Positions 1-63,912 of a stretch of DNA of 64,000 bases are shown in pieces. The stretch lies in assembly GCA_047495785.1 (NCBI GenBank), contig JBLDXI010000019.1:558001-622000 (forward strand). Reading direction: 5' to 3'. Position numbers and translations under genes: made by a program. Positions within the stretch are counted from its first letter, which is position 1. The number at the start of each line of letters is the position of its first letter. A model generated the notes under the pieces. It worked only from the letters and a program-made list of their open reading frames with translations, did no database searches and was not told where the DNA came from. Source of the DNA: Lepidodermella squamata (Eukaryota > Animalia > Gastrotricha).

Positions 1-3000
1 ATTCATCATTACTGGCGATTACATCTCAGTAAAAAACGAAATTCATAAATGTTTCGTAATTTTTGTAAATCCTTCAGGTGAATGGATACTCGCCTGGTAG
101 TAGCGCGACTGTTTTAGCGAAAAATGTCCTCGTTCCGAAATTATGGTCGATCCAGCCATTTGTTGTCGGCGTGGGGGCGCATAGCCTTAACACGCCCCAT
201 GAAGTTAACATCATCTCCATCCGGGTTTTTCAATCACCACCTTCGATAATCGACGTCAATTCCCTGCCACTTGGAATGTCGCAGGTGCCTGAATTCAATT
301 TCAATGGCTCTAATTTTGGTTTGAATTTAAAATAATCAGTAAATTTTGATTGATCAATTTTACCAACAGAAAACTGGATCGTTCAGTATCGATACAAGAC
401 TAATAAAACAGCTATAAATCCAAATTTTGTTAAACGAACTACTGGCTATATTTTGCTGCCAAAAGAAAGCGATAGGCAAGTGAGAATGTACAGCAAATTC
501 GTAAGAATTAATTCGATTTTTCGCAACATTTTCAATAAATTTTTCTCATCCAATCAGAATCTTACCGCCGGGGGTAGTGAATTGGTCACGCTACGCGTTG
601 CTGCTAACGTTGAAGCATCTGTGGTTTGTGATAGTTTTGTCGTTTTTCTCTGCCCAGATGAAGATTTCATCAACGGATCTCGTATGATTTCGAATCAAGA
701 TTTCGTTGCCAAATTTTCTGCTTTTCTTTTAATTCAGCGAACGAATATTATCTCCCACATTCATTTCGCGGTATCGCCGTCGCGGTCAATACGGCCAACT
801 CTTCGTCGAGGGGAGCGGCTTTCTATCATCAGTACAGATCTTACGTAGGCTCAATCACCACGGGGATCAAGCGAGGTAACATATTGAACGACCGCGTTCA
901 AGGATATGCTGTTTACGAGATAACTATCACGCCATCAAATGCTTCGGTAACTTAATGAAAGGCTCACGCATCAGGATTCAATTTTAACGCTTTTAAGGCT
1001 TCGATTTTGTTTTCCGATGGCAACAAAATCTACTTCGAGCCAACACCGGCCAACTTCCGAGGCATGTATACAGCCGGGCCGTGGGTTGTTGGAGCTTCAG
1101 CTGGCAACAGTCCAGCCAACAAATGCCAGATTCGGATCTACTCTATTGAAGTCCACCGCTCTCCGCCGGTAGCAAACCCAACAATATCTACTGAAAACGG
1201 TAAATTATGTAAATTACCCCAATAATTGGCTTATATTTTGCGTCAATTCAGCTTTTCTGGGAACTCGCATGCCCGCCTTCACTTATGACGGCTTCAACTT
1301 GGGTATATCCAAAATCGCTCATTTTTTATTTTTAACAAGTGTGGTGATAGATGATTGGTCGGCAAGAGGAAAGGACCCAGATGGAAGAGACAACCAATTC
1401 ACGCAAATGATTCAAACGCAGACGAAAGGCCTTACTCTTGTTACAAAAACCACCGACAGGCAAGCTGCGATCTTCTCTAGAAAGGTAATTTTTCGAAGAA
1501 GTTCAAGAATTTCATTGATTTTTTTTAAATTACTAGCCGCTACCAATGAATCAAACATTCAGTTACAACTTCGTCGTCAATTTGACTCTGACGCAATATT
1601 TCAACCTTGGATCTTTCGATTTTTTCCTCGCGCCGAGTGAATGTCTTAACAAACAAAGCTGGAATTGTTCGTCTTTTCATTATTTCGAAGCAATCGAAAT
1701 GTTTTTACCCCATAAACGCAGACTTGGCGTCCGAGTTTTACGCCCAAGCTCCAATGAAAGGATTCCATTTCATAGTTAACTTGAACAATGACGGGCTTCT
1801 TAAAACTGTCTATAGCTTGGAACCAACACTTGGCAACAATCTGACAATGGAAAACTCATTCGCGCCAGATTTGAACGTCAGCCCGTCGAAATTCACTGGG
1901 GATACATCGTACCGAATCCTGGTTCAGGGTGACTACATTTCAGTAGGGAAGAACTTTGTAAGATTATTTTATTGTAATAATCCTATTCCTAAGATTTACG
2001 TGACGCTGAATGATGGTGACGTAGTAAGTGTTTTGGAGAGCATATTAGCTCCTGGGCTATCGAGCAATGGCCCTTGGCATTTCGGAATCGGAGCCAGGGC
2101 GAGTGATCAGCGGTTCGAAATTTTCGTAAAATCCATTCAATGCTTCAGATGTAACTGCTTCAGAAACGTTCAATGCTTCAGATGTAACTACTACTACTAC
2201 TACTACAACCTCTACAACCAACGCAACTACTTCTGCCGCTTCTACAACCGAGACTACGACAATTAGCGTTTCACCCTCTGCTGAATCATCGAGTTCTATC
2301 ACTTCTACGGCAATACAATCATCACTATCAGCTTCAGTATCCACAATATTTCAATCGACTCAATCGACAGGCATAACACCTTTTACGGGACGTATCGAAA
2401 ATTTACTCCAATTAAGTTAGTAATGTCGACAAACTTGGTGACCGGAACATTTTTTCATACCTACCTTTTTTCCTTAGGCATAGGTGGAAACCTGCGAACT
2501 ATCGGAAATATCACTCTTTCAGACCAGCGAGTTTTCTCAAGTGAAATTTGGGATCCGGCTCTGGAAGATCCAAGTTCAAACACTTTCAAAGAAGTTGCTA
2601 AGGTCTTCGAATCCGTGGTAGGTGATATCGAATACCAAATCCCTCGGGTTCAATTATTATTTTTAAGATCGAGCAAATTTACGCTGAAACCGGGAATTTT
2701 GTTGACATCAGGGCTAAAGTGACGAAATTTAGCTACGGAAGCATCATCGCGGATTACATTGTTGCTTTGCGAAGCCTAACTCAGCTGTCGGAGGAACAAA
2801 TTCTAGAGAAGGTTCAGTCGGCAGTCGAAAAGCTTGCTGTCACCATATCAACGAAAATCGGGAAAATTCTAAAAATCGATTCGGCTTACATAAAGAATCC
2901 CACTATATCGCCTACAGTTGCTTTTGATTCCAATATTAAAAAGTTGGTTCCAGCCAAAGCTACGTCGAATAAGAACTCGAAAGTAATGGCTTCACATTTA

Positions 3001-3033
3001 ATAATAATTATGGCGATTGTAACTATGATTTAA
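1..3033 (+). pseudogene. Array copy 1 (5' part outside window): L-type lectin-like domains + Thr stalk + SEA + GPI-like tail; frameshifted
   Basis: Short GT-AG introns separate exons homologous to copies 2-5 (PWVVGASAG, SSNGPWHFGIG, YGSIIADYIVALRSLTQLSEEQI at ~2737; stop 3033). A 25-nt insertion at 2138-2162 shifts the frame just before the Thr-rich stalk. Confidence 0.75.
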
Positions 3034-3570: not shown

Positions 3571-3809
3571 ATGATCTACCGAAATAGTTTGATCGTAGGA
3601 TTTGGAGAGACACGTACTATTGCTAAACTTTACTTGAAAAATGATTAAAAGTATTTTATCCCAGGGCTTTCAGTACAATTGATGGTGGTCACGGCCATTT
3701 ATCTGGCCATCCATATGCAGTTTTCAGCTTGCCAAGACATTGCTGAACTTTCTCTCCCAAACGGCACCTCAAGTGAGCTTATAATAAAAGTTGATTGTTT
3801 CCAGGTGCA

Positions 3810-4100
3810 GCTTCCCGGAGCTTCCAGCTTGACCAGCCGAACACCAAGCTTTGGCCTTGCGTCAAAGCTGGCGAGTTCAGGACCTTGGAGGCTTATGAAC
3901 ATGAGTTATTGAAGAAAGAGTTATTAAATCTAGAGAAGGCACATACGGTTTTACCCGAAATATTTTCAACATCGAGCTGATTTCTTTTGTGGGTGTTGAC
4001 TTCGTTCAGCTCTGAAAAGCCACGCTCACAGTCCGCCGTAGCCACAGGCAAAACATTAAGATCATTGAGCAGTGTCCTCAAATGACTAGTTTCCGGCTCA
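3810..4100 (-). mobile_element. hAT transposase C-terminal (dimerisation domain) remnant in intron 2 of copy 2
   Basis: VLPVATADCERGFSELNEVNTHKRNQL followed, after a frameshift, by MFISLQGPELASFD, both typical of hAT C-termini. No TIRs located. Confidence 0.75.
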
Positions 4101-7100
4101 ACTCGAGTGCGCTTCCATTTGAAAGCGTGTTTGCGTCCCACTTTGGTGCCATTTTTCTTTTGCAAAGTAACAAATTGTTGTGCTTTTCAAAAGCAATACG
4201 TTACTTCGCCTCGAAATAGGCAGAATTAAAAAACGACGATGGTTTTTCCAGCCCCTCGATCAAATCGTTCCTCTTCAATTTTCTGCGCATTATCAAAGGA
4301 CTCGCCGATTTTATTACTCTGTGTTTCAAGCATGTTGCTCCAAGAGATTTGGTGCGCTTGACTTTTCACATTGACTTTTCTTTCAGTTTATCCCAAATAG
4401 ACCTACGGTCCTGATGACAAGTAGCACCGTCAGTTACGTCAAAGAGTAGAATCCTTCTTCTGATTTCCGATAGCGTTTAGCGTTGCTGTATTACTGTAGC
4501 GTGTAGCGTTACTTTGAGCTTAGGAGTAATTTCAATGAGTATTTTTTCATTTTTTCAGTCGCAGGAAACCTACTTTGGCAAATGAGGCTGAACGCCGCCG
4601 TTGATATCGGATCGCAATCAGTGAGACTCGTAAAAGATGTAAAGACATACCAAAATGGTGCGATTTGGTGCGCTACGGTAAGGATTTGTTGTGCTTCATC
4701 AGCCTAAAATATAAATTATTGTCACTTACAAACGCAGAATATCACTTCACCAAGCCTTCGCGTGCAAGCGAAACTTGGCCTGAACGTTACGAGTGGAAGT
4801 GGCGCTACATTCGCCATTCTGCTCGTAGATCGATATAAAACTGCGAAGAGTAAGATTTGTCCAAGCAATATTCTGATCTTATGAAATTTGTTCACAGCTG
4901 GTGGGAAAAATTTGGATGTGCAGAGAGATTCTTTCGTCGGGCTTGGCGTTATTTTCTCGTCGATGAAAAAATACGCCTACGTCGTTTATTCCCGAGTCGC
5001 CTTCGACACACTGGATGACGCTTTATTCTTTTACGACCAACCGATACAGATAGCCAATAAAAGCATCAGCGCCTTTAAGAATGGAGGATATTTGATAACC
5101 GTGGAAGTTTGCGACAACGAATTGTCAGTCTGGATGACCGTTCTGGATGGGAGCAAAGCAACCAAAATGTTCTCCCAAATCAAATTGAACGGTTTCGACT
5201 CGCTGGTATACGACTTACAACTGGGGGTAGTTGCTACGGTATCCGCCAACGGCTACGGCAACGTTGACGTTGCGTCGGTTACAACGACTTATCTCCCTTC
5301 AAATATCAGTAAGCAGATCGCTAATCTTCCTCACCTGGTTTTCAAAGTTTAAATAGGCAAAACATGGTCACTTGTTGAGGAATTGACGTTCGCTGGTGGT
5401 GACCCGGGTTGGTCATTATAGTTTTCATTCTGAAAGATTGTTAAAAAGCTTAATTTTCAGCCAATTACAAAACTGCTGCGAAGAAAACGACAGATTTTTC
5501 GGCCCTTACCCCATCGAACAGTTTTTCGCCTTCGAAAGGGTGCTACTTACATTCGCTAACTAATCGTCATTCAGCCTTTTACTCGAAAAATGTGAGAGAG
5601 TTTATACCTAGTTTGTCATTTGTCATTTATATCATTTCCGCTCATACTAACAGGCTTTACCGCAAGATGGTTCTGACATACGCGTGGTTTTCACGTTGAA
5701 TGTTCAACGAGTCGATAATGGGAATGGTTTCACTTTGTTTATAGCTCCTGTTGGTTCGCCAGCCGTTGGCGTAAACTGTAATATAAATTTTTGGCTAGCA
5801 TATCAATGAATTCTGGATTTTCTTATAAGCTACTGTTGGATTTCTGACCGACCCTTTACGCGGATTAGCTGTCATTGCTGGGGGGCCGTCTTGGAACCAT
5901 ACCATCCGCTTAGTCCATGCTGACTCTGACGGCTACGAATCTCTGAATGGAATTCTCGCACTCGTCAACCTAGCATCAACAGTGACGGAGAGAGTCAGTT
6001 ACAATAATACAGCTTTTGAGATAGCGGTGCTAGGAGATTACGTCTCTGTAAGAAATTCTGCGGTTTTTTCGAAAGCTTATCAACTTTTTTTACAGCTGAC
6101 TGCTTATTTACCCGGGAATGGTCTGACGATTCTTGCGAAGGATGTGCGGATACCTAATTTTTGGTCCATTAAACCATTTATTGTTGGCGTTGGGGCTCAC
6201 AGCTTGAGTATCCCTAATGAGGTCTACGTGATATCTATTCGTGTATTCAAATCTGACCACACGACTGATGTCGACCCATTTCCTGTGCCCGTTGGAATGA
6301 CCCGCCTTCCTCAATTCAGTTTCGACGGGTCGAATTTCGGTATAAAAAGATATTTTGAGGCGTAAGGATTTTCACATTGCTTTTACTAGGAAATTGGGCT
6401 GTCGAGTATCGTCATCAAAATTCAACCAAAATCAATCCGCTGCTAGTCCCACGAAACACGGGTTTCATCCTACTGCCCAAAGACAGTGGCAGACAGGCTC
6501 GAATGTACAGCAAATTGGTTAGTCTGATTATTTTCGTCCACTATAGAAAATTCCAGTTTTCCGTGTCTAGAACTTAACTGGAAGTGGAAGTGACCTCTTA
6601 ACTCTGCGGGTGGCGGCAAATGTGGAAGCGGGGGCAGCTTGTGAGGGCTTTGCAGTGTTCATAATACCGTCGGACCATTTTTACAATACTAACCGTCAGT
6701 GCAACAATGTAGCCTGAAATAACGATCATTTGATTGGTTTATTTTCGTTTTTCAGCGGCTTACTTCTTCTATCCAAATCCTGGGAGAGGGATAGCGATAT
6801 CTGTCAACACTACTGTCGTAGCTTCCAGAAATGCAGCTTTTATTTACAAATAAAGATCCTACTTGGGCCAGTTGTCATCAACTCCTGCTGTAGATCGGAT
6901 TTATGACGATCGAGTTCAGGGTTACGCGGTTTACGAAATCTCGATGTCTACCATTGCTCCATCCGTAAGTCGTTCAACTTCATTAGCCGGTTAAAGAGTC
7001 CAAATATATCTTGTCTTCAGGCATCCATTTTGTTTTCAAATGGATTGACTGTGGCTTTTAAAGTAGGCACAAGCCAGGGTATGTACACAGCTGGGCCGTG

Positions 7101-7982
7101 GGTGGTTGGTGCTTCATCTGGAAGTTACGCGAGTGCTGGCTGTCAAATAAGAATCTACTCGATAGATGTTTATCGATCAGCATCTAAATCCAACTCGAAT
7201 CTCGCAGATAATGGTATTGAAACGCTTTTACTTTACAGGCACCCAACGGCTCCTATTTCTTTTACTTCAAGTGCTCTTAGGCACTCCGATTCTTTCATTC
7301 TCATACGACGGCTTCAATTTAGGTAGATCTCATCGGAATAAAATGTTCCCATTATGTTGTATTTACATTTACATTTCAGATAACTGGGTCGTGAAAGGAA
7401 GGGACGCCGATGGAAGAGACAATAACTTTGATCCACCCATCCGGAATACAGATGGAGGACTGCTTCTGATACCGAAATCAGTTATAAGGCAGGCATCTAT
7501 GTTTTCAATTCAGGTAATCTTTCTGCCTGATGTTTTTTGTTCTCGCTATATGATCAATATAACTTTAGCCCATCCCAGCCCAACAGAATTTCAACTACAA
7601 TTTTCTGATAAACATAACAATAACGCCTCAGTTCCGCTACGGCGCCTTCGATATTTTTCTCGTTCCTGGACAAAATCTTGAAGCTATAAATTGGGATTGT
7701 TAGTCATTGATTTTGTTGTCTTTCTGTGAGATTGTTTTTCTTCTCGACACAGTCACGCTATCAGAGTTCTACGCACAGTCTCCGCTGAATGGATTTCATT
7801 TCATAGTTAGTCTAGCTAACGGAGTCATTCTAAAAACAGTCTTTACCACGGAGGCAATTCTCGGCGCGAGCTTGACCACGGAGAGCTCCTTCGGTACAGA
7901 TTTAACAGCCCAGACGAACGCCGGTCATATTACTGTCATATTAAAATACGTTTAAGTTCATATTAATGATGTCTTACAATAC

Positions 7983-8137
7983 ATATTACATTCATATAGT
8001 AAAATGTCCTGAATGTAATATGAATTGTCATATGAATTTTTTCGCGATATCCATATGACATTCATATCACTACTGTGCTAAATTTCGTATGATCGTTCAT
8101 ATGAAATTCAGGACATTTTACTATATGAATGTAATAT
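7983..8137. repeat. Perfect 32-bp inverted repeat in the left subterminal region of the CACTA element
   Basis: ATATTACATTCATATAGTAAAATGTCCTGAAT at 7983-8014; exact reverse complement at 8106-8137. Confidence 0.9.
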
Positions 8138-8479
8138 TATCACCGGTTTGTAACAAGTCGTATTTCTGTAATATCATCAATTTATTATCTGAATTAAAGT
8201 CACTGACAGAGAAGTCACCGAGAATGAACTAGCTAGAACATAGGATGAAAAATGTCGAGTAAGTCAGAATATGATGGTAATGATAATGATAATGAGTCCA
8301 GAGTATATAATGGCACAGGGTATTGTAATATAATGGCAAGTTCCGAAATCATAATTTCATAGTACAGAAATTCATAAGTAATCACTCAAACGGATCAGAA
8401 AATGCATCAGAAAATGCAAACATATATGTAACAACAAAACACAGAAGTTTGTTTTGCCACAGCGGGTTTAGGCAAATAA

Positions 8480-10658
8480 TTAACATGACGGCGACATGCT
8501 TCGTCTGTTGCTTCTTCCTTGCTTCTTCTTCCTCCATGCTTCTTCCTCTTCTTGTTCGTCATCGCCGCTGCTGTCACTTCCACTTCTATCCTCGTCTTCT
8601 TCATCGCTGCCGTGTTCGTCTTCTTCGACTACGCCATCGCTGGAGCTATTTTCCTTGTCTTCATCGCCATTGACTGAGCCGCCGCCACTGCTATCGTCGT
8701 CGTACTGCGGTCCGCTGCTTTGTAAGAACCCGCCTTCAGTAGTCACAAGCGTAACGGGAGGTGGCTCAACGGGCACTGGCGATAAGCGCTCTTCGTTCAT
8801 CCTTTTCTTGGAATGGGTCCTCGCCGGGTTGAACAGGCTATCCAGTGCATTAAAGCCAGGGTCTTTCTTAAGGCGGCGCATTAGTCGACGAACGGCCTCG
8901 ATCACACCGTCGAATTTTTTCCTGTTATCTGTAAGCTCTGGAAACAAACTCTTGGCCAGTCCTATTAAAAGCAGGCTGAAATATACTGATAATAGACAAT
9001 AATTATTGCTTTACCTTCCAAATCGGTGCACTCATTCTGAGGTAGTTGTGTCTTGGTGACCCCAGAGCCTAGCTTTTCCTGGCCGAAATGAATTAGGTAC
9101 GTTGCGACATGGAATGTATATGGGTCTCGCTTGTTGCAATGGAAGCGTTTACAAACAGCTTGGTAGAGTTCCAACTGATCGCGAGTCCAAGGCACGCCTC
9201 CGATGTTGGGATCCTAGAAAAGAAACGATTCACATGCATTTTTGATGGCGATAATCGACGCTAACGGTACCTGGTAGGTTGCGTTCGAAGTCACAGCTGC
9301 ATGCGAAGTGGCGACAATGCCGGTCAGATTGTAAACTAGTTGCAACAGATCATTGATTTGGAGCGACATGTTTTTCAACACAAAGTAATCAGCACTTTCA
9401 AGGTCCTCCCAGTATCGATCGCTGCCAATGATTCGGTCAATGCGCTTCTGCCTTTTCGTTCTAAGTTATAAGCAAGACGCAGATAAGGTAAAAATATGAG
9501 TTGGACGGTAAAAACTTACAGCTCGCTGTAAATCTCTTCGACTTGTTTTCGCCTAATCGTGAGAGAAAAAATAAGTCAAATAATTCAAATAATTAATCTA
9601 CCAATTACTTTGCGTCAAAGGTTTGAAGTTGCCGGCCGGATGGCTTTATCGGCGTCGCCTCGTTTGGCTTGGACGAGTCAGCCTCAACCTCTTCCAAGGT
9701 AAATTGCTTTCGCTTCGCCGGATTCGACATTTGGTTGCTTGTGCTAGGCGTATCAACACTGGGCTTGGAATTCGTTTTCGGTTCACCCGTAGCAGAATTA
9801 GCCTTCGATTCAGACGTAGTTGATCTCCGTTTCGATTTAGACGACGTTGATTTTCGCTTCGAGTTGTTGGATTTCGCCTTTGATTCAGATTTCTTAGGTA
9901 TCGGCTGTGAGTCAGACGAGTTTGATCTCGGTTCCGGGTCGAACGAAGTCGGTTTCTGCATCGATTCATAATTGTTGAATTGCGGCTGTGATTCAGATTT
10001 CTTAGTTATCGGCTGAGAGTCAGACAAGGTTGATTGCTGCATGGATTCATAATTGTTGAATTGCGGCTGTGATTCAGATTTCTTAGTTATCGGCTGAAAG
10101 TCAGACAAGGTTGATTGCTGCATGGATTCATAATTGTTGAATTGCGGCTGTGATGCAAACGGGTTCGATTCCTTTTCCGGGTTAGATGAGGTTGGTTTCC
10201 GCTTCGATTCTTCAGACTTCTTTGATGTCAGATTTGGTTCACTCACCGACTTAGAATTTTGACTGCTGAATGGATTTCGGCGCGTTTTTCTCGTAGATGT
10301 CTTACGCGGCACCTCTCCACTGTCTGAATCAGGTCCACCTGAAAGTCGAGTTAACCGCTTTAGCTCAGCGTTGGCCATATCACAAGAGGCAACTAAATGA
10401 AGCTTGTAAAAAGCGAGGCAGTGTTAAATAGTTGAAAGATTTACATTTTGAAAGGAAGACCCCACTGCCTACTGCATTTTTGCCCTGCATCGGGGCGGTA
10501 TTTAATCTGTTCATCCAGGTCCAGCTATAACGCTGGCCGACCACCAGCTTTTTCGGTGGGTCTCGCAGGAGGGTATTCGTAATGTAACAGTAGTACGGTT
10601 TCTTTCTGGCATCAACGTGCATGACGAGGTACCTTTCCGGGTCGCTAGCAAGCGTCAT
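8480..10658 (-). CDS. Transposon accessory protein, multi-exon, low-complexity middle, possible C-terminal BEN-like domain
   Basis: ORFs 10380-10658, 9605-10378, 8965-9195 and 8480-8947 can be linked through GT-AG introns (e.g. DLEG|LAKSLFPE); the small middle exons were not fully resolved. Divergent from the transposase and inside the TIRs. Confidence 0.65.
9960..10152 (-). repeat. 81-bp (27-aa) coding repeat in the transposon accessory gene
   Basis: GATTCATAATTGTTGAATTGCGGCTG at 9963, 10044 and 10125 (QPQFNNYESMQ three times). Confidence 0.9.
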
Positions 10659-11243
10659 AGCTAAGGAATCTAACTGAACAGAAGGAAAAATTCAACTAGC
10701 CATTCCTAAAAAAGTGACAGATGTGAACAGTGTGAATCAGTTGTCTACACGGTGCAGCCGAGGTGGTATGTTTAAGAATCAGGGTGTCTAAAAGCTTAAA
10801 GTCATCGTGGCAAAAAAATTTCGCAAGTCTTTTTGCCGCCTTTTCTCACCGCTAAGTTTCAAAACTGAAAAACGTGCTTACAATTTTTCACATTTGTTCT
10901 TAAACTTATAACTTTCAAATTTAATATAAAAACAAATTAATTTTTATTAATTTTATTGTTTTAAAATTCAAAAATCGCGCGTGAATCGAGACCAGAGCCA
11001 TCGCCAAAGCAGGCGGTGAGTGAAAGTATGTGACTCGCGGCATCACGGGGTCACAACAAATGAAGGAAATTTAATTTTGATGGCGTTTAATCTCTTGATT
11101 TCATCATTTCTTTGATTATGCAACAGAGTGTGTGGATTAGCTGCCACTCAAGTCGTGCTGCGAGTCGCCCCGCTTTTTTAGTCAAAATTCCATCATAAAT
11201 TACGCCAGTTCATCAGAAACAAATTTTCAATTCATTTCAACAG

Positions 11244-15100: not shown

Positions 15101-15274
15101 TTTATAATAAAATTTCCTGTGTGTTGTCGTGATAAACCAGTTTTTACTCGTTCGACTGGCTGGGTCTTTTTACCAAATACCCAATTTAGTAGACGCCAGA
15201 GAAATAAAGATAAAGCGATCATTTTTGAATTATTTATATATCTTATTTTTTACTGTTCTTTATAGAACTTGAAA

Positions 15275-51579: not shown

Positions 51580-54500
51580 ATGACCTACCTTTCACGTATC
51601 TTCTTGGCTATTTCTCTCGTTTCGGTTCTACGCGCTAATACGCTGAATTGGATAACAATAGCGAACCTATCATACGACGGGTCGTCGTCACGTTAGCTGA
51701 TTACCGTTAAATTTCTAGCACATCATCGCAAATTTGTCCTATTTAGAGAACTGGATGCTTGCAGAAAAGTCAAATTTTCTCAAAGTGCAAACAACGGGGG
51801 GTCTAAAGGGTTCCCCCATTTCTGTAATCTCAAAGTCCACTACTTCAGGAAGTAATAAAGCAATGTACTCAGCGAACGTAAGAAACTTTACGGTTGTATC
51901 GGTGTTTTCAAATTCTGGCTTTCATCATTTCCTAGACCTTGCCTACGTCCGGCAATTTGATGGTGTTAGTTTCAGCTACTTGCACAATGGCTTTCGACCC
52001 GGACGGAATGTCCATATTTTTCATGCCTAAAGCTGATCTGACAACCGATGGAATCAAATGTAAGAAATTATCCGATATCGTTTAACACAACAATATTTTT
52101 CATTGAGAATCGCTCTTGCAGCGTATCCATCATATCTCTCGCCTAAGTTCAAAGGCTTGGCTTTGGTTGTTAGTCCTCGAAAGAAACTGCTACGACTCGC
52201 GTATGGAGATGTGGCTGAAACAGATGTCACAAGTACCGCCGCACTGTCTCTCACTGATGGCGACTGGGACTCAGCTCGGTCTATGGTTGATGATAAGCCA
52301 GTATTCCAATTCACATTTATTGGCGATTACGTCACCGTTTGTTCTGAGCAAGCAATTTAACGCCTATTAAGATCAATTCCCCATTAGGTCAACATGACTG
52401 CATCATCAAAATCTTTGCAAATAGCTACCGATGTTCCAATTCCGAAATTTCTGAAATCCGGCCCGTGGGTTATTGGCGTCGGTGCAAGTAATTCCGACTA
52501 CGATAACGTAGTATCTGTCTCATCGATAACGACGAAATCCGCTGAAACCGGGACGACAGTGGCAACTGACCAGTTTACGAGGCTAAAAGATCTCAGTTTT
52601 GACGGCGCTGATCTTACCAATTGGCTACGGGAAATGCAAAGTCCCTCGAACGGTTTCAAACTCCCACCACCGGTTATCAACTCTAATTTTGGCTTGCGAA
52701 TGCTCGACTCGACAACCGATAGGTCTGCCCGCGTAGTCAGCAAATCAGTAAGAAAACTTGACTATTCAGTCTGATATAACGCTATTTCGATTTCACCTCG
52801 AAGTCACTGACGCTATCAGGTACAAATTTCGTCATAACGTTTTCTATCGTTATTCAACCGGATGCGAAAGGAGAGGGATTTGCATTTCTGTTGTATCCGA
52901 AAGATTTAAACAGCAGCTTGGGTGAGCCGTAGTATATTAGTTATGCGGAAAACATCATTCATATATCATAGGATTTCCTTACTCCGCCCCAATGCCTTTC
53001 CGAGGACTCGCTATCATTATTAACCCACGCGATGGTGCGAGTATTCAATTGTCGCATTGCTATGAGCCGGTTGATTCTGTTCTGAATTGCCCCATTCGCG
53101 GGAGCAAAGTCCCGAAGCAACAAATATTCGGATATACGTTTCACAGGGTGGAGATATTTGGTAACTCCGTCTCTGTATGTTTCGCATAAATCTTAGTACA
53201 GACTAAGAACAAAAAATGTCGTTTTTCCTGTGAAATAGTATGCTTACAATTCAGCAAGCGGCGTTACCACGATGATTGCTTCTAACATAAGTGTTGGCAG
53301 TCTAGCAACCATGGGACCTCTTGTTCTCGGTTTTGCGGCTACTGCAATCAAAACGATATCTCCTGTTCGTCTGCTGTCAGTTAACACGATGAAAGGCCCG
53401 ACAAGAGCTGCCAGCCCGCCGCCAGTGGAAGAAAGTACGATTTACGCCTTTAAATGTCTTCAATCTCATCAGTATCACAAATTACAGGATTGACATATCT
53501 CAACGAATATTCTTTCGATGGTTACATATTAGGTGAGATTTCAATGTAGCTTTGAACGATGTAGTCATATTTTCTATATCAGACAACTGGGTCGTCAAAA
53601 AGAGGGAAACGAGTGGAAAGTACGCCCTTACAGCGAGCTCTCCTTATCTGCTGAATTTCGGAGGTATTTTCCTGCATCCAACTGCTACTACGGCGCAACA
53701 AGCTGTTATGTACTGCAATAATGTTAGTCACTATGCGTCGCGCCTTTCAATTGCGTCTAACCGGGCTCTTTTCTATAGGCATTTCTTCAGGGCGAAAGCT
53801 TCAGATATCACATTTCAGTCAAGCTGAACGTGAACGCATCATCAGCTGGCGATGCATTCAGCTTGTTCCTGGCTCCACTCAATTCTCTGAACACATCTGA
53901 TTCATCTTGGCAAAGTAAACTTATCATTTCAGTTTGCCCAAGCAAAATCCTATTGCTTCAGGTCCCAGTGGTGGTTTCTACGCGCAATACCCACTATCTG
54001 GCGTTCAGATCATGATAATTCCCGTCAACGTTGATACGTTCAAATTGAAAGTCGTGTACAAGAATCCGCCAATTTCATCAACATTCGAAGATGAAACTCC
54101 CTTGGGTAAAGAGGTGAATCTCAACAAAGATATCTCCCTCGGGAACATACAATTCAATATTACGTTTGGGGAAGATTTCTTCAGCGTATGTTATTACTTC
54201 TTCTCATCCTTTAAGGCTAGTGCCTTCCTTCAAAATTTAGATCAATATGGTTGCAAGTGATGGAACGGTGAAGTACCCTGCTACCAACCTACCAGTGCCA
54301 GGCATATCTACCAGTGGGCCTTGGCATTTTGGAATCGGAACTCGAAGCTCTTCGAATGTAATGGAGTTGAGAGTGTTAACTATTTATACGTATTACATTG
54401 GGGAAATGACCACTACCACCTCAACCACCGCAGCCACCACAACCGATCCAACGACACCTACTTCCCCGACCACCGAGGAACAGAGTTCACCAGTTACGGA

Positions 54501-55374
54501 TGCTCCGATGCAATATTCGCCGACCGATGAGCTAACGTCCACAGTTTCAACTACTCAAAATGTCACTATCACAGTCAACGACAGTTCTTACCAGGCAACG
54601 AGTCCGAGAATGAGTCAAGCAACAAAGGAATCATCGAGTAGTGCAGCTGTTCAAACCTCAGTTATGACAGACGCTCCAAAGCCGATTTCGGCGGCAGATG
54701 CTGTGGGAAATGCAATGAGCGGCTCTTACTACGCTATGAGTAAGATATTGGGTGATGCACTCAACGGTGCTAATTCTGTTTTAATTCAGGAGTGGATGAT
54801 GCCTGGTTCAAGCTCAATGGAAGTGTCACACTTCCTAATGGTAGGAACATTTCGAGCGATGACTGGCCACCTGAACTAGACGATCCAAAATCTTCGTTAT
54901 ATAAGGAAGTCGCTGGAATAATGAGTAACGCGGTTAGTCTTGCATAATCCCCGAAACAGCACACATGATTTTCATCATTAATCATAGATCAAAGCATTTT
55001 ACGAAGAAACGGGCGAATTTCGAGATGTCTTAGTAAATGTTACCAGAATCAGCAAAGGCAGCATAATTGCTAACTACATCGTCGCACTGAGGAGTCTCAC
55101 CCAGCTGACAGAGGAGCAAATCCAGCAGAAAGTCAAAGAGGCGATTAAAAAATTGGCAGCAGTTGCCGTTAGTAAAATGGCTGGTATCAACATAAATGAT
55201 GCCGGGCCAAACGTGATCGGAAAAGTTACAGTCATATCTGCACCACAAAAAGCATCATTGTCAAAAGTTGTAACAACTCCTGCCTATCGTGTTTACAAAT
55301 CTGAATCTAACTATCTCCATATTGGTCTTAGATATGGTTTGATTTTTCCGATTGTCTTGACCTCAGTTCTGTGA
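51580..55374 (+). CDS. Array copy 8: three L-type lectin-like domains + stalk + SEA + GPI-like tail
   Basis: MTYLSRIFLAISLVSVLRA; motifs PDGMSIFF, GEGFAFLL, GDAFSLFL; GSII at 55057; ends YGLIFPIVLTSVL*. Confidence 0.85.
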
Positions 55375-55657: not shown

Positions 55658-58600
55658 ATGCCAAAGTTGGCGCTCTCAGTTTTTCCGTTGTTGTTTCTGT
55701 TCCCTTCGATTAGTATTGGACAATGGACCACGATCCCCGAGCTAACTTTTAGCGGTTTAGAATCTGGTTAGATGAAATAGAGCAGCTTTCCAGTCATGAT
55801 AACGAAGCTTTTTTAGATGCAGCCAACTGGAAAACTGTCGCCAAAAACCCAAAAGAATTGGATCTCCTGATTACGAGGGAAACCCCGACCTCCAGCAATA
55901 ACTACGTCTTGCATCCATCATCAGTCAATGATCAGCAAAGCGCAATTTACTCGATTAACGTACCTAATCAACTTTCAATCTTTATTTTAATTCTGTGAGC
56001 TTTATTTAAAGCCTGTTCCCAACAATTACGCAAATCTGCGAGTAACTTTCTCAGTCGGGTTAGAAGCTGGAACAAATGGCGATGGTTACTCAGTGTTTTT
56101 CGTCCCGAATGAAACTCTTGCGACTGGAGTTGAAAGTAAGAAAGTGGATGCGTTTAGTTTTTCATGCCATATAACATGTTTTACCCACCACAAGCTTCTC
56201 CATCCTACCTTGCCGCCAACTTTAAAGGCTTGGCTCTGTTCGTTCAACCATATTGGAGTTCGATAAGACTATCTGGCGACATGGCCTCAGGCTACGACGT
56301 CACCTCGCCGCAAACTTCATTAACAGACATGGATTACAGCAGTTACGGAAGCTATTTCTTTGGCAACGCTCAAATCGAATTTTCATTTATGGGTGACTAC
56401 GTATCGGTATGTAAAATTATTCACCTCTTTTCTTCGCTTAGCTTTTGCCTTTTACCTCAGGTTCAAGTTACAGCGGAAAGTGGATCCAAGTTCTTCGTTG
56501 CCAAGGAACTTTATCTTCCCAAGTTCCTTAAATCTGGCCCATGGGTAGTCGGTGTTGGCGCTCATAACGGAGATAACACCAACGAAGTCAAAGTCTACTC
56601 GATCGAGACAGTTTATTCTAATGATTCCAGTCTGCAGCCGAAGCAACCAGCGACATATGCCACCGCCCCTATTTGGTTCGATGGGGCCGATCTGAGTAGC
56701 TGGACTGTTCAGAAGAGGAGCTCGGCGGACTTAACTCCCTACCAAGCTCCTCGACCTACGCCGCCGTTTGGACTGGTTCTACTACCAAAACAGGATGAGT
56801 ATCGCGAGATTAGACTTGTTAACAAAAATGTAAATAACTAAATGAAAAATTGACAATATGACGAAAGATTCCCAATAGGCTTTGTATCAAAGTGGTAGCG
56901 ATATCTTGATTCATTTTGCGGTAGTTATCGAACCAGGCTCAATGGGTGACGGTATAGCCCTTTCTCTGCAATCCAATGAACTAGCTTCGCAACCTGGAGG
57001 TATGACTGAATTTGATTCTATATTATTCCAATTTCACTAGGAATTTTCCTTGCAGCTAACACCAAGTATTACACGCCGGCCCCTTACAGAGGGCTGCGAA
57101 TAATTCTATCTCCGAAATCCAATATGCTTGTTTCGTTCAGTTGGTGCTATTCCTTCTACAATAATATAGTAGAATGTAAAGGATCAACGAAAGATATGAA
57201 GAATCAATCGATATACGGATATACAACCCATGAGTTGAGGATCTCTGGCGACATTGCTTCGGTGAGTTAGAAACGAGTAATCTGATGGTAGAACTATCAA
57301 ATTCTGATTCTGATTCTTCAAGTATTCTTACACAACGGCCGATGGTTCGAAACAAAATTTTTTCAACAGCTTCCGCTCGCCTGGTTTATCAGCAATCGGT
57401 GCGCTAATATTTAGCATAAGTGCAGTCAACAGTGATACAACCTCGCAATATCGGCTGATTCACGTCAAAACATTTATTAATGCACCGTTGACATCTTCAG
57501 CGCCAAGTTACAGCGGATCAGGTTAGCTTACATTCCTTTTTAAAAGTAGTGATTGATTATCACCTTTGATACAGTTGCTTACCTGATTCCTCAATCCTTC
57601 GACGGCTTTAGCCTGCGTATGCTTTATCATTATTCCTTGATTAGTGATTTTAATTTGGCATGAAACGTAATGTTATACAGGTGATTGGACTGTTCGAAGT
57701 AGGGACACAACCAACAACATAGTAACTACATGCATGGCGCCAAGACTCTTACGACCACTTACCGGTTTGTATCTCGATCCAAATGCTCGGAATAGGCAAA
57801 GCATCATGCTCTGCAATAGCGTAAGATAGACGCTCAAATCAAATCAATCGAAAATGAATTATTTGTTGAACTTTCAGCCCATCTTGAAGCAAGGCTTAGG
57901 GTTTAATTATGCAGTCGTAGTAGCAATAAATTTTCCCACTTACCCTAATGCTGATGGCTTAGCTATAATGTTGGTTCCTCTATCCAATTACTCGAGTGCC
58001 TGGTCGTGTAAGGCTTTAAGGCGTAAATTTAAATTTTCTATGCGCCTTTAAAATCGCAGGGTCCAATGGCGAGTTCTTTGCCCAGGTACCCCTTATGGGC
58101 GTACACCTTTTGCTGCTGACTGATAATGGGACAAATTCTCTGCGACTCATCTATATGCCGCAGCCAACCTCAGAAAAGGTCCGAAGTTTGACTCCGATAG
58201 TTCCGGAAATTACGCTAACCAGCGATCGAATTAATGGAACCCTGAAGTTCGAACTTTTATTCCAGGAAGATTTCTTAACGGTACGTCTTCCACTAAAATC
58301 TTCTTTATTTATGAGTTTCGTGCCCAATATAGGTAAGAGTGACTTGTAATGATGGCAGCCAAATTGTTGTAGCCGATCGGGCAAATGTGACCGGAATGTC
58401 AACAAACGGCCCTTGGTCTGTTGGTATTGGATCAAGATCTACAACGAATGCATCGGATTTGGTAATTCTCAGTGTAAGAACCTACTGGCTTGGTAATAGC
58501 AATGTGAGTACTACAACGACGTCAACGACTTCGACAACATCCACGACCGATAGATCCTCAACAACCCCAACTGTTACTACGAGAATGTCAATTACTAGCA

Positions 58601-59324
58601 GCAATAATGCACTTCCAACATCGATTCCTATTTCTAAGGACACTTCAGCTGCTCGGCTTTATGACGATTCCAACTATTTCCTACTACGTTTGTCCTTGTA
58701 ATAGTATTGGAAGTCCAGAAATGAAGGGTTTTTTTTACTATAGAAGCCGAGGCATCCTTCACGTTACGAGGAAACGTGTCTCTCCCAGATGGTCGAATTA
58801 TTTCAAGCGAGCAATGGCCAAGTGATATGAACAATGCTTCGTCATTTCTCTTCAAAGAGGTCGCTGATGTTATTTCGAATGCTGTAGGTCATCCTTATTA
58901 CCTTGAAGATCTCTCTTATTCTGACACAAAAATTCAGGTCACGCAGTTTTATATGGCGACTGGTGAATTCAATGATGTCAAAGTCACTGTCACTGCGATC
59001 CGAAAAGGTAGTATAATCTCGGACTATATCGTCGCCCTACGAAGCCTAACGCAATTGTCTGAGGAGCAAATTCAGAAGAAAGTGCAAGATGCTGTTCGTA
59101 TTATGGTCTCAACAGCTGCGAAAGTAATTCAGGGCATGAATATCAAAGACGTTGGCGAAACGACTGTATCTTCGGTGTCAGTTCTGTCTCGACCGAAGGC
59201 TGCGCTGACTACTATGCAAGTTCCACGCAAAGTTGATGATGAGAAAAAGTTCGCATCGAGTACAGCAAATCAACATTATTTTACAGTAGCCTTAATCATC
59301 TCGTTGTTGAACGCTTGCATGTGA
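55658..59324 (+). CDS. Array copy 9: three L-type lectin-like domains + stalk + SEA + GPI-like tail
   Basis: MPKLALSVFPLLFLFPSISIG; motifs GDGYSVFF, GDGIALSL, ADGLAIML; GSII at 59007. Confidence 0.85.
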
Positions 59325-60201: not shown

Positions 60202-63200
60202 ATGACGAAGTTGTTCCTCTCATCGTTGTCGTTACTGCTGTTGCCTTCGTTTAGCATTGGACAGTGGGCGACGATCCCAGAGCTGACTTTCAACGGCCAA
60301 GCATCTGGTTAGATAAATTCAGTGACGTTAATGTTAATATAACGAAGCTTTTTAGATGCAGCGAATTGGAACACTGTCGCAAAAAACCCAAAAGACTCGA
60401 GTCTCCTGATTACAAGGGAAATCCCTACCTCCAGCAATAACTACGTTTTGCATCCATCATCAGTCACTGATCAGCAAAGCGCAATTTACTCAATTAACGT
60501 ACCCAACGACTTATAATGTTACATTTAATTATAACAACTCCGTTCAAAGCCTGTTCCCAACAATTACGCGAATCTGAGAGTAACTTTCTCAGTCGGGTTA
60601 GAAGCTGGAACGAATGGCGATGGTTACTCCGTGTTTTTCGTCCCGAAAGAAACTCTTGCGACTGGAGTTGAAAGTAAGAAAGTGGATGCATTTAGTTTTT
60701 CATGCCATATAACATGTTTTACCCACCACAAGCTTCTCCATCCTACCTTGCCGCCAACTTTAAAGGCTTGGCTCTGTTCGTTCAACCATATTGGAGTTCG
60801 ATAAGACTATCTGGCGACATGGCCTCAGGCTACGACGTCACCTCGCCGCAAACTTCATTAACAGACATGGATTACAGCAGTTACGGAAGCTATTTCTTTG
60901 GCAACGCTCAAATCGAATTTTCATTTATGGGTGACTACGTATCGGTATGTAAAATTATTCACATATTTTCTTCGTTTAGATTTTGCCTATTGCATCAGGT
61001 TCAAGTCACAGCAGAAAGTAAATATAAATTCTACGTTGCCAAGGAACTTTATCTTCCCAAGTTCCTTAAATCTGGCCCATGGGTAGTCGGTGTTGGCGGT
61101 CATAACGGAGATAACACCAACGAAGTCAAAGTCTACTCGATCGAGACAGTTTATTCTAATGATGCCAGTCTACAGCCCAGCCAACCAGCTGCATTCAGCA
61201 CAACCATAATTTCGTTCGATGGAGCCGATCTGAGTAGCTGGACTGTGCAGAAGCGGAGCTCGGAAAATCTAACGACTTACGATTCTCCACAGCCAACCCC
61301 ACCCTTTGGCCTGGTTCTTCTACCAAATGAGCAATATCGGCAGATCAGACTTGTCTATAAAACTGTAGGTAACAACCAGCTAAATAAAAATAGATGCTAA
61401 CCAGAGATTTTCGTCGAAGAATTTGTATCAAAGTGGTAGCGATATCTGGATACAATTCGCGGTTGTTATCGAACCAGGTTCAATGGGTGATGGTATAGCC
61501 CTTTCTCTACACGGAAACGAACTATCTTCGCAACCTGGAGGCATGATTGTAAAGTTGATTACCAGTCATTTTTCACTATAATTTTTCTCGGCAGCTACCG
61601 CCAAGTATTACGCGCCGACCCCTTACAGAGGGTTGCGAATTATTTTGTCTCCGAAATCCAATATGCTTGTTTCGTTCAGTTGGTGCTATGCGATCGAATC
61701 TAATATAGTAGACTGTAAAGAATCAGCGAAAGATATGCTAAATCAGGGTATATACGGATATACAACCCATGATTTGAAGATCTCTGGCGACAGAGTGTCG
61801 GTGAGTTCTTTTTTTTCGTGGTAAATCTCGAGTCCTGATTTTGTTTTTTTCAAGTATTCTTACACAACGGCCACGGGTTCGACAGAAACTGCTTTTAACA
61901 GTTTTGATTCGCCTGGTTTATCGACAATGAGTCCTCTGGTGTTTAGTATAAGTGCAGCCAACAGTGATACAGCGTCGCAATATCGGCTGATTCAAGTCAA
62001 AACTATGATGAATTCACCGTTGACATCTACAGCGCCAAGTTACAGTGGATCACGTAAGTTGAGATTCCTGATAATAGCTCTGATCGAAACTTAACTTTAA
62101 TTCAGTTGCTTACCTGAAAGAGCAATCCTTCGACGGCTACAGCCTGCGTATGTTAATCATTATCACTAAATACTTAGACATTTAAATTAAAAACAATTAT
62201 ACAGGTAATTGGATTGTTCATAGTAAAGACAGTAACAGCAACCCAGCGGCTGCACACACAGCTCCGAGACTCTTACGACCACTTGGAGGTTTGTATCTCA
62301 TGCCGAATGCTGATACCAGGCAAAGCGTTATTTACTGCCTCAGCGTAAGATATTATAATCTCAACGGATGAAGTTTATTTTTCGAAATTATTTCAGCCCA
62401 TCTTGAAGCAAGGCTCAGAGTTTAATTATGCAGTCATCGTAGCAATAAATTTTCTCACATACCCTAATATTGATGGCTTGGCTATAATATTGGCGCCGCA
62501 ATCTAACTTCTCAAATAATGGCTGGTCATGTAAGGGTTCAGATAAGCTTAAATGTTCCTTAAGGTTTAAATCATGAAAATCCCAGGGATCAAGGGCGAGT
62601 TCTGGGCCCAGGTCCCCGTTATGGGCATACACCTTATGCTGCTGACCGCTAACGGGGCAACCTCCCTGCGACTCGTCTATATGCCGCAGCCAACCTCAGA
62701 AAAGGTCCGAAGTTTGCCCCCGATAGTTCCAGAAATTCCGCTAACCAGCCGGCAAATTAATGGAAATCTGACGTTTGAACTTGTGTTCCAGGAGGATTTC
62801 ATCACGGTGAATTTTTCTTCGAAAATTTCTCTATTAATGAAATTCAGTGCCCAATAGGTAAGAGTGACGTGTAATGATGGAAGCCAGATTGTTCTAGCCG
62901 ATCGGGCAAATGTGATTGGAATTTCAACAAACGGCCCTTGGTCTGTCGGCATTGGAGTGAGAGCTACAGCGAATGCATCCGATTTTATCATTTACTCTAT
63001 AAGAACCCACTGGCTTGGCAATAGCACTGTGAGTACTACAACGACATCAACGACTTCGACAACATCCACGACATCGACAATGACCGAAAGGTCTTCGTCA
63101 GCTACGACTATTACCCCGGAAATTTCAAGAACGATTTCTGATAGTTCGGTCACTCTAAGTAGCAATATGATCCTTCAAACATCGACTACGTCACCTGCGC

Positions 63201-63912
63201 CGAAATTGATTCCCACTTCAAAGGAACCTTCAACTGCTCGGTTGTATGACGATCCCAGCTATGTTCTACTAAGTTGGTCCCTTTGAATGTAATAGGGAAA
63301 ATCAAAGCGTGAATGATTTTATTTAATATAGAAGCTGAGGCATCCTTCACGCTAGGAGGAAATGTGTCTCTCCCAGGTGGTCGAATTATTTCAAGTGAAG
63401 AATTGCCAAGTGATCTAAACAATGCTTCATCCATTCTCTTCAAAGAGGTCGCTGATGTTATTTCGAAAGCCGTGAGTAGTCCTTTTTAACGTTGGGAATG
63501 TCTTTTATTGTGAAAGAAAATGCAGGTCACGCAGTTTTATATGGCGACTGGCGAATTCAATGATGTCAACGTCACTGTCACTTCGATCCGAAAAGGGAGT
63601 ATAATTTCTGACTATATCGTAGCCCTGAGAAGCCTGACGCAATTGTCTGAGGAGCAAATTCAGAAGAAAGTGCAAGATGCTGTTCGTATAATCGTCTCAA
63701 CAGCTGCGAAAGTAATTCAGGGCATCAACATCAAAGAAGTTGGCGAAACGACTGTATCTTCGGTGTCAGTTCTGTCTCGTCCGAAGAATGTGCTGACTAC
63801 TATGCAAGTTCCACGCAAAGTTGATGATGAGAAAAAGTTTGCATCGAGTCGATCAAATCGACTTTATTCTTCAGTAGCCTTAATCATTTCGTTGGTACAC
63901 GCTAGCCTGTGA
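60202..63912 (+). CDS. Array copy 10 (recent paralog of copy 9)
   Basis: MTKLFLSSLSLLLLPSFSIG; colinear with copy 9; GSII at 63595; ends SVALIISLVHASL*. Confidence 0.85.

Follow-up and report, generated by a model that had tools for sequence, protein, structure and literature searches.

A tandem gene array predicted to encode mucin-type surface glycoproteins with multi-module, ConA-like heads

The window (the whole 64,000-nt stretch of DNA analysed here) is filled by a compact tandem array of 10 related genes, all on the plus strand, which bears out the original prediction of at least 10 same-strand tandem paralogs. We mapped a stop codon for each gene, ending at the last coordinate listed for it below, and divided the genes into subfamily A (G1 to G5) and subfamily B (G6 to G10). 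Modules were located with an HMM built from window sequences, with per-domain E values of 1e-37 to 1e-75.

1..3033, plus strand: G1 (subfamily A), 5' end cut by the window edge
72-236, 369-1162, 1347-2149, plus strand: G1 module tail, gamma and delta modules, then a SEA-like block and hydrophobic tail
3571..20206, plus strand: G2 (subfamily A), ATG at 3571
4588-5292, 5460-6254, 6386-7179, 7376-7908 + 18968-19237, plus strand: G2 alpha, beta, gamma and (split) delta modules
7909..18967, strand not given: DNA transposon, 11,059 bp, inserted within a G2 exon
8480-10378, minus strand: low-complexity ORFs of the transposon
12372-13913, 13997-15100, plus strand: transposon ORFs
15568-16202: transposon tandem repeats, 169-bp unit
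19240-20206, plus strand: G2 stalk, SEA-like block and tail
22129..27360, plus strand: G3 (subfamily A), close paralog of G2
22916-23627, 23792-24574, 24707-25501, 25698-26493, plus strand: G3 alpha, beta, gamma and delta modules, then Thr stalk, SEA-like block and tail
28098..33780, plus strand: G4 (subfamily A), with an N-terminal LamG_3-like domain at 28143-28815
29024-30080, 30252-31061, 31183-31970, 32156-32957, plus strand: G4 alpha, beta, gamma and delta modules, then stalk, SEA-like block and tail
36978..42223, plus strand: G5 (subfamily A), with a LamG_3-like domain at 36978-37489
37854-38585, 38762-39542, 39682-40459, 40651-41436, plus strand: G5 alpha, beta, gamma and delta modules, then stalk, SEA-like block and tail
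42638..46466, plus strand: G6 (subfamily B), the reference model, with a signal-peptide exon at 42638-42749
42808-43590, 43639-44447, 44640-45438, plus strand: G6 beta, gamma and delta modules
~45440-45789, plus strand: G6 Thr/Ser stalk
45854-46015 + 46068-~46330, plus strand: G6 SEA-like block, then hydrophobic tail to 46463
46137-46142, plus strand: G-S junction of the G6 SEA-like block
47229..51323, plus strand: G7 (subfamily B), 79% identical to G6; its stalk is the longest of the array, followed by a SEA-like block and tail
47398-48193, 48245-49050, 49233-50031, plus strand: G7 modules
51580..55374, plus strand: G8 (subfamily B), signal-peptide exon from 51580
~51700-52537, 52595-53394, 53579-54396, plus strand: G8 modules, then stalk, SEA-like block and tail
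55658..59324, plus strand: G9 (subfamily B)
55816-56619, 56677-57475, 57683-58488, plus strand: G9 modules, then stalk
58725-59321, plus strand: G9 SEA-like block and tail, one open frame through a stop-free intron
60202..63912, plus strand: G10 (subfamily B), 79% identical to G9
60355-61157, 61212-62010, 62204-63013, plus strand: G10 modules, then stalk, SEA-like block and tail

Across the whole window, the module HMM found 33 full modules of ∼220 aa and one truncated at the window edge, with three per gene in G6 to G10, four in G2 to G5, and at least 2.25 in G1. This agrees with the predicted three to four repeats of a 200- to 250-aa module, and the motifs predicted for the repeat are those of the module consensus (F-D-G....N-W, R-Q..I-Y-S, G-D-G-F-A.F, G-L-A, and G-P-W..G-V-G-A). 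The modules are of four position-specific types, alpha, beta, gamma, and delta, which form clades with supports of 1.0, 0.89, 0.52, and 0.99. Their order is fixed, beta-gamma-delta in G6 to G10 and alpha-beta-gamma-delta in G1 to G5 (G1 being 5'-truncated by the window).

Eight of the at least 10 array genes are apparently intact, with open spliced frames of 920 to 1430 codons and conserved intron positions; most module copies have introns at matching module positions ∼53, ∼95, and ∼168. The original prediction had called for splicing the models with RNA-seq. One intron, at 45231-45282 in G6, was confirmed by a contig of RNA run X2 that carries its GT..AG joint, and the remaining exon models are approximate. 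Evidence for expression is thin, comprising this contig and low RNA-run word shares for two of the genes. In G1, the Thr stalk (∼2150-2390) is read in another frame following a +1 shift near position 2150. Only a 31-nt GT-AG intron would restore the frame, and the gene may be a pseudogene.

The structural model covers one module piece. We submitted to AlphaFold2 the part of the G5 alpha module at window positions 38022-38591, ∼75% of one module, which lacks the first ∼53 residues and includes a read-through intron, every module being split by introns. The resulting model had a pLDDT of 75 and a pTM of 0.76, and its top Foldseek matches in the PDB were legume lectins, Emp46/47, ERGIC-53, and an Entamoeba legume-lectin-like domain (E ∼1e-4). 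VIA-align placed it on ERGIC-53 with Z of 12.8 to 13.1 over 141 to 144 aa (rmsd, 2.6; 16% identity), a match recovered twice, once as a second look and once by searching independently of Foldseek. VIP36, arcelins (Z, 12.1), and YwfG (PDB 7yl4; Z, 9.4) were also among the matches. The top-ranked AFDB clusters were legume or L-type lectin-like by name, and all of the ten best named language-model matches carry L-type lectin families. Galectins were near-equal (Z, 12.9 over 122 aa) and CBM66 scored nearly as high as the L-type lectins, so structure alone leaves the subtype unsettled. Given how closely the galectins score, we describe the modules as a predicted ConA-like beta-sandwich, with L-type as the best-supported subtype. 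The original prediction had claimed an L-type lectin fold and named modules that are not ConA-like as its refutation; the one piece folded and searched came out ConA-like, with L-type lectins as its best and longest matches.

Pfam scans took exon-sized pieces because introns split the modules. No lectin family reached threshold in these module exon pieces, the L-type families of the ConA-like clan (PF00139, PF03388, and PF18483) included, and a first scan of single-exon ORFs gave no match. Lectin_legB was the sole family to match more than one piece (2 of 56, both below the cutoff), with a best E value of 0.0067 at 12 bits against a cutoff of 26.3. The matches lay on the G-D-G-F-A exon and fell in the part of the profile around its A-D-G strand.

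We then compared the residues that serve sugar and metal binding in L-type lectins. At the column of the sugar-binding Asp in the A-D-G strand, placed by the motif and by a structural alignment whose register is approximate, 20 of the 33 modules have Asp or Glu. The acidic residue at G-D-G is kept in 15 of 15 modules of G6 to G10 and in the five gamma modules of G1 to G5; it is missing in the other 13, which comprise every alpha module plus the beta and delta modules of G1 to G5. Canonical L-type metal loops are marked by a V-A-V-E-F-D-T or G-I-F-F-D-S-F-D-N-D strand with acidic and Asn residues after it, and by D-x-F-x-N. In the sequences of the 33 modules, we found no counterpart of the Ca2+/Mn2+-binding loop after the G-L-A strand and no D-x-F-x-N-like motif; the invariant Gly of that strand is followed by hydrophobic-hydrophobic-x-Pro/Ser/Asn, without a conserved Asp or Asn. 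With no such loop, and with an acidic residue at the Asp position in just 20 of the 33 modules, we treat glycan binding as putative.

Downstream of the modules, the predicted Thr stalk proved mucin-like (PTS), at 52 to 154 aa and 43 to 72% Thr+Ser+Pro in G2 to G10 (the G1 stretch lies in the shifted frame). The GSII block also held up, in that K-G-S-I-I..Y-[IV]-[IV]-A-L-R-S-L follows the stalk directly in all 10 genes, 85 to 109 residues before the C terminus. This block is probably a SEA module, as had been claimed. All 10 genes have the G|S-[VI]-[VI] SEA autoproteolysis motif beside the stalk and a C-terminal anchor-like end; of 19 exon pieces scanned, 6 matched Pfam SEA (PF01390) with an E value of ≤1 (best, 0.008, below threshold), with one match at E of 0.011 and 16.3 bits against a cutoff of 26.4 spanning profile positions 9 to 93 of 106, and language-model features assigned the block to SEA clusters with a score of 0.89. 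On the other side, AlphaFold2 modelled the SEA/tail exon poorly (pLDDT, 56), and the model was left out of the fold searches; profile searches of PDB sequences with SEA alignments matched no SEA structure.

The proteins of all 10 genes end, as predicted, in a hydrophobic stretch (12 to 20 residues) with no cytoplasmic tail, 0 to 10 residues following it. By inspection, Ser/Ala/Asn/Gly-rich stretches precede the hydrophobic end in 10 of 10 tails, and, as judged by eye, the tails resemble the claimed GPI signals. The claimed signal peptide was clear by inspection in seven genes (G2, G3, and G6 to G10) and doubtful in G4; no signal-peptide-like start and no start codon were found for G5, and the 5' end of G1 lies outside the window. 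Ahead of the alpha module, G4 and G5 encode an extra N-terminal LamG_3-like domain, for which language-model features scored 0.98 with 77 of 100 matches in LamG_3 clusters. Pfam Laminin_G_3 (PF13385) matched the G5 copy at E of 0.09 and gave no match to the G4 copy, and searches with the LamG_3-like exon found neither sequence homologues nor a PDB match. Neither this domain nor the module types, the G2 transposon, or the apparent G1 frameshift had been part of the original prediction.

Sequence searches recovered no relatives of the family. A phmmer search of 1.84 billion representative proteins with a 227-aa module exon found no genuine homologue; its sole match, P0001 (a chlorovirus glycoprotein-repeat protein), was rejected as spurious. 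Protein homologue searches with the SEA/tail exon and with an 85-row module alignment gave no match, and none of the JGI metagenome contigs scanned carried the pattern of the A-L-R-S-L-T-Q block. Against PDB sequences, a profile of the C-terminal module half retrieved nothing meaningful, and the lysozyme matches of an N-terminal-half profile arose by chance, MAFFT having overlaid two exon sets; this profile was discarded. The combination of three to four lectin-like modules, mucin stalk, SEA-like block, and GPI-type end was absent from the protein databases and papers searched, in keeping with the original prediction, which did not recognise a family of this architecture. That the family is undetectable by sequence search shows the scale of lineage-specific surface biology missed by homology-based annotation.

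In animals, the established role of L-type lectins is that of cargo receptors with one lectin domain, working in the early secretory pathway. The best structural matches to the module were ERGIC-53/LMAN1, VIP36/LMAN2, and Emp46p/Emp47p (Z, 11.4 to 13.1 over 141 to 144 residues; 12 to 16% identity). The A-D-G-L-A-I-W strand of the ERGIC-53 type resembles the module's G-D-G-F-A-I-F, and ahead of that strand ERGIC-53 has L-T-P...Q-R-G-S-V-W where the module has L.P....R-Q..I-Y-S. Proteins of this type have one lectin domain, a type I span, and a cytoplasmic sorting tail, act between the ER and Golgi, and bind mannose in a Ca2+-dependent manner (PMC8226959). The array proteins, in contrast, have three to four tandem modules, no recognisable metal loop, a mucin stalk, a SEA-like block, and a GPI-type end, the last three of which point to the cell surface. 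There are a few reports of single-domain L-type lectins with immune roles in crustaceans (PMC8226959, PMC11602452).

The C-terminal part resembles that of MUC1 and MUC3/12/13/16/17, in which a Thr/Ser-rich O-glycosylation stalk precedes a membrane-proximal SEA domain with G|S-[VI]-[VI], implying a shed, non-covalent ectodomain. Mucins of the MUC1 type lack a globular lectin head and are held by a transmembrane helix with a signalling tail, whereas the array proteins have a short stalk (52 to 154 aa), a GPI-like end, and a lectin-like head that makes up their bulk. Fungal GPI adhesins (Als, Epa/Flo) combine a signal peptide, N-terminal binding domain(s), a Ser/Thr stalk, and a GPI signal, and occur as tandem families. 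The logic of this layout is the same, but the fungal folds are PA14 or Ig-like and there is no SEA, so no homology is implied. Plant LecRK receptor kinases and bacterial (Lactobacillus/Lactococcus) adhesins such as YwfG also display an L-type domain at the surface for recognition or adhesion, but have one lectin domain and kinase or LPXTG/cell-wall anchors, and belong to other kingdoms. Several CRD-type domains per chain, with built-in multivalency, occur in tandem-repeat galectins, the mannose receptor family, and tandem F-type lectins (PMC11186620), whose folds and families differ from those of the array module; L-type or legume lectins are not mentioned in that review.

Taken together, we consider it probable (roughly 60%) that the array codes for membrane-tethered mucin-type surface glycoproteins with multi-module ConA-like/L-type heads that are likely to bind glycans or glycoconjugates. 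We expect such proteins to be secreted, with heavy O-glycosylation of the stalk and a GPI anchor. The SEA module would self-cleave at G|S-I-I, leaving head and stalk held only non-covalently, so that force could shed both, as in MUC1-type mucins. Raised above the glycocalyx, the head would offer a composite multivalent surface for extracellular ligands, most likely glycans or glycoconjugates, through a binding site unlike the one that classical L-type lectins use with Ca/Mn. Growth of the family was probably by tandem duplication, plus gene conversion and some decay. If correct, the array would add a new class to the lectin-like receptors of eukaryotic cell surfaces, with three to four ordered modules on a mucin/SEA stalk, and a natural system for learning how an L-type fold works without a metal site.

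The same architecture could instead carry modules that are not lectins, serving as ConA-like scaffolds for protein or other non-glycan ligands or only as bulky structural heads of a coat protein or glycocalyx. Sugar binding has been lost in this way from the legume-lectin fold of arcelins and alpha-amylase inhibitors. The arcelin matches fit this alternative, as do the missing Ca/Mn loop, the loss of the canonical Asp from every alpha module and from the beta and delta modules of subfamily A, and the lack of any lectin family at the Pfam threshold. Against it, subfamily B modules and subfamily A gamma modules retain the acidic G-D-G residue, and the domains that match best in structure bind sugars; we regard it as possible, if doubtful. 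We give lower odds to a role as mainly shed or secreted components of matrix, coat, or mucus, structural and glycan cross-linking rather than receptor-like, with the hydrophobic end as only a transient anchor. Both the SEA motif and the GPI-type tail permit release, multi-module heads could cross-link, and several very similar tandem genes are common for abundant structural products, but the RNA word shares of 0.13 and 0.08 for two of the genes (one run, tissue unspecified) are low for an abundant product, and we judge this improbable.

Decay of the array into mostly non-functional copies would account for the transposon-split G2, the apparent frameshift in G1, the G5 start codon that was not found, and the relic terminal-exon fragments. 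It is very hard to reconcile with the eight open, consistently spliced frames, the spliced RNA contig, and Ka/Ks values of 0.33 to 0.39 in three recent paralog pairs, with constraint strongest in the SEA block, and we consider it highly improbable. These ratios indicate that the family is under purifying selection and give no signal of the positive selection that the word "diversified" in the original prediction might suggest. Within the preferred reading of surface glycoproteins with probable glycan-binding heads, a more specific version is unlikely but worth stating, namely, a lineage-specific extracellular cassette of L-type-lectin-like head on mucin stalk that has no detectable sequence relatives elsewhere, in which the proteins would be sheddable GPI-anchored receptors, the fixed beta-gamma-delta order would form one composite metal-independent site, and the genes would constitute a new family of surface sensors of glycans or contact.

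The introns of the source genome are short, and relic terminal-exon fragments lie between genes of the array. An Rfam scan of the window matched no RNA family, and the ORFs of the transposon matched no Pfam family. This 11,059-bp element, which splits the delta module exon of G2, is bounded by 15-bp perfect terminal inverted repeats (CCCAGACGAACGCCG) and flanked by a 2-bp target duplication (AG).

The window encodes ten paralogs that share a real architecture, in which a head of several ConA-like, L-type-lectin-like modules sits on a mucin stalk, followed by what are probably an SEA domain and a GPI anchor. The features originally observed were confirmed, and their interpretation as a diversified glycan-recognition or adhesion system was partly supported. 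All-against-all comparison of stop-free translated segments showed that this single repeated family, on the + strand, occupies nearly the whole window, which is eukaryotic sequence (GC, 0.40 to 0.45). We built approximate exon models by dynamic programming, scoring codon usage, similarity between paralogs, and data-derived splice sites; the models are adequate for domain analysis, but single splice sites may be off. Introns in the models are GT-AG and very short (median, 52 nt). Some stop-free introns have lengths that are multiples of three and lie in frame (38134-38196, about 56290-56340, and about 58890-58935), and such read-through introns lengthen the apparent exons in a plain ORF list, adding 15 to 21 spurious residues. 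All ten predicted same-strand paralogs were present with ends that could be located (G1 to G5, subfamily A; G6 to G10, subfamily B). Signal peptides had been predicted throughout the family; by eye, signal-peptide-like N termini were recognized in G2, G3, and G6 to G10, but the candidate in G4 is doubtful and none was found in G5.

Paralogs of the array, with ends from the exon models and signal-peptide-like N termini by eye
G1, + strand: end, 3033
G2, + strand: N terminus, 3571; end, 20206
G3, + strand: N terminus, 22129; end, 27360
G4, + strand: N terminus (doubtful), 28098; LamG_3-like domain, 28143-28815; end, 33780
G5, + strand: LamG_3-like domain, 36978-37489; end, 42223
G6, + strand: N terminus, 42638; end, 46466
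G7, + strand: N terminus, 47229; end, 51323
G8, + strand: N terminus, 51580; end, 55374
G9, + strand: N terminus, 55658; end, 59324
G10, + strand: N terminus, 60202; end, 63912

A module profile, seeded with three G6 modules and iterated on the exon models, detected 33 full ∼220-aa modules plus one cut by the window edge (E, 1e-37 to 1e-75, window models). As predicted, genes carry three (G6 to G10) or four (G2 to G5) modules; the 5′ end of G1 lies beyond the window edge. The consensus (F-D-G....N-W, R-Q..I-Y-S, G-D-G-F-A.F, an invariant Gly in the G-L-A strand, and G-P-W..G-V-G-A) includes every motif named originally. Introns fall at shared profile positions (∼53, ∼95, and ∼168) in most copies, indicating that the module multiplied together with its introns. 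Phylogenetically, the 33 modules grouped by position and not by gene, into alpha (first module of G2 to G5; support, 1.0), beta (first module of G6 to G10 and second of G2 to G5; 0.89), gamma (0.52), and delta (last module of all genes; 0.99), with median identities of 24 to 42% within types versus 19% between them. Based on this grouping, the beta-gamma-delta head is older than the gene duplications, and alpha was gained later by subfamily A. That the positions are fixed and not equivalent suggests a division of labor among the modules, or a composite site built by them jointly, and not repeats of a single site. G4 and G5 also encode an additional domain of ∼230 aa at the N terminus, mostly in one exon, that begins with L-[VI]-A-Y-W-P-L.E......D-V-S-G-N.Y-H-G, typical of LamG_3 domains. 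Atlas language-model features assigned it to Laminin_G_3 (score, 0.98), Pfam matched Laminin_G_3 weakly (E, 0.09), and sequence searches found no homologues of it.

Because no full module occupies one open frame, we folded the longest contiguous piece (38022-38591, first module of G5; profile positions 54-217, including a 63-nt in-frame intron), aligned with 84 other exon pieces. The AlphaFold model was all-beta (pLDDT, 75; pTM, 0.76), with low confidence where the intron is read through. Foldseek ranked legume lectins, Emp46p/Emp47p, ERGIC-53, and an Entamoeba legume-lectin-like domain at the top of the PDB (E, ∼1e-4; query TM, 0.5 to 0.57). Using VIA-align, ERGIC-53 reached Z 13.1 over 141 to 144 residues (rmsd, 2.6; 16% identity) and legume lectins Z ∼12 over 147 to 151 residues; galectins scored up to Z 12.9, but across only ∼122 residues. 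A Foldseek-independent search again placed ERGIC-53 first (Z, 12.8), followed by Entamoeba, Methanocaldococcus, VIP36, and Emp47 L-type domains, and clusters named legume or L-type lectin-like headed the AlphaFold DB search. For a G9 module exon, the named top matches by language-model features were all L-type lectin clusters (score, 0.91). Lectin_legB was the sole Pfam family matching more than one exon piece (best E, 0.0067, below threshold), and its match fell on the G-D-G-F-A exon at matching profile positions 60-95. The agreement among the fold searches indicates that the modeled module is ConA-like. The L-type assignment of the original prediction is the best-supported subfamily but is not proven, since scores for galectins and CBM66 are close behind and every Pfam match stays below threshold.

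Glycan binding is the weak point of the earlier reading. The sugar-binding Asp column (A-D-G) holds Asp or Glu in 20 modules (15/15 in G6 to G10 plus the five gamma modules of G1 to G5) but Ala, Asn, Gly, Ser, Thr, or Val in the remaining 13. In legume lectins and ERGIC-53, Ca/Mn ligands sit after the strand equivalent to G-L-A; there the modules have no conserved acidic or Asn residue, with hydrophobic residues and Pro/Ser/Asn instead. Should the heads bind glycans, they would do so without the classical metal site. That they bind in some other fashion, not as lectins, is a serious alternative, to which the 13 substituted modules and missing metal ligands point and against which the 20 acidic modules stand.

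The predicted Thr stalk follows the last module as 52 to 154 aa of 43 to 72% Thr+Ser+Pro. Next comes a K-G-S-I-I..Y-[IV]-[IV]-A-L-R-S-L-T-Q block in 10/10 genes, retaining G|S-I-I at the position of SEA self-cleavage in every one. Pfam matched SEA below threshold in the one gene that has the block in a single open frame (E, 0.011; profile positions 9-93 of 106); SEA was also the sole recurrent Pfam family there, matched at E ≤1 by 6/19 exon pieces, and language-model features placed the block among SEA clusters (0.89). We consider SEA probable rather than established because the AlphaFold2 model was poor (pLDDT, 56) and profile searches of PDB sequences found no match. At the C terminus, every protein has a hydrophobic stretch with no more than about ten residues after it, agreeing with the predicted lack of a cytoplasmic tail; judged by this tail shape, a GPI anchor is probable. 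The head may be shed.

This architecture, combining known kinds (the L-type lectin fold and SEA mucins), appears undescribed so far: the full-text literature searched on L-type lectins with SEA, mucin, tandem, or GPI contained no description of it, and a 2024 review of tandem-repeat lectins leaves L-type lectins unmentioned (PMC11186620). A phmmer query of 1.84 billion representative proteins with a module exon (single match, spurious), word-indexed searches, including one with an 85-row module alignment, and a metagenome pattern scan returned no true relatives, although exon-sized queries and limited search lengths may have hidden relatives that are longer or more distant.

The family may have diversified, but positive selection was not shown: the recent pairs G6/G7, G9/G10, and G2/G3 (75 to 79% protein identity) have Ka/Ks of 0.36, 0.39, and 0.33, and no 100-codon window exceeds ∼0.8. 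Within G6/G7, constraint is strongest on the SEA block (Ka, 0.03). A nearly identical G9/G10 tract (56158-56700 versus 60696-61240; codons 100-200, Ka 0.00 and Ks 0.04; whole-gene Ks, 0.31) points to recent gene conversion. G1 has a +1 frame change between the last module and the stalk (∼2140-2190), with a 33-nt direct duplication at the site; the frame would be restored only by a GT-AG intron of 31 nt, the shortest of all, and the change may reflect a pseudogene, an error of assembly, or an unusually short intron. Two relic terminal-exon pieces are probably remains of unequal crossing-over, and G2 is interrupted by a DNA transposon whose 15-bp terminal inverted repeats (CCCAGACGAACGCCG) are perfect and whose 2-bp target duplication is AG. 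Neither long transposon ORF matched a Pfam family.

Relic pieces and transposon features
21671-21802: relic terminal-exon piece, intergenic, upstream of G3
59451-59726: relic terminal-exon piece between G9 and G10, resembling the G8 terminal exon
7909-18967: DNA transposon, 11,059 bp, inside the third exon of the G2 delta module
8480-10378, minus strand: acidic/Ser-rich repeat ORFs
12372-13913, + strand: long ORF, 513 aa
13997-15100, + strand: long ORF, 367 aa
15568-16202: three to four 169-bp tandem repeats

Sequencing run X2, recorded as probable RNA, contained 13% of sampled G6 words and 8% of sampled G9 words, thin evidence of transcription for both genes. A spliced X2 contig confirmed the intron at 45231-45282 (52 nt, GT..AG), in agreement with the exon model. 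Run X1 spans introns and intergenic DNA and is therefore a DNA run. At 42593-42827 and elsewhere in 42500-46600, X1 contigs form two overlapping sets, of which the first matches the window exactly and the second differs by 5 to 10% (e.g., 16 differences in 235 bases), pointing to a second, divergent haplotype or to a near-copy of the array left unassembled.
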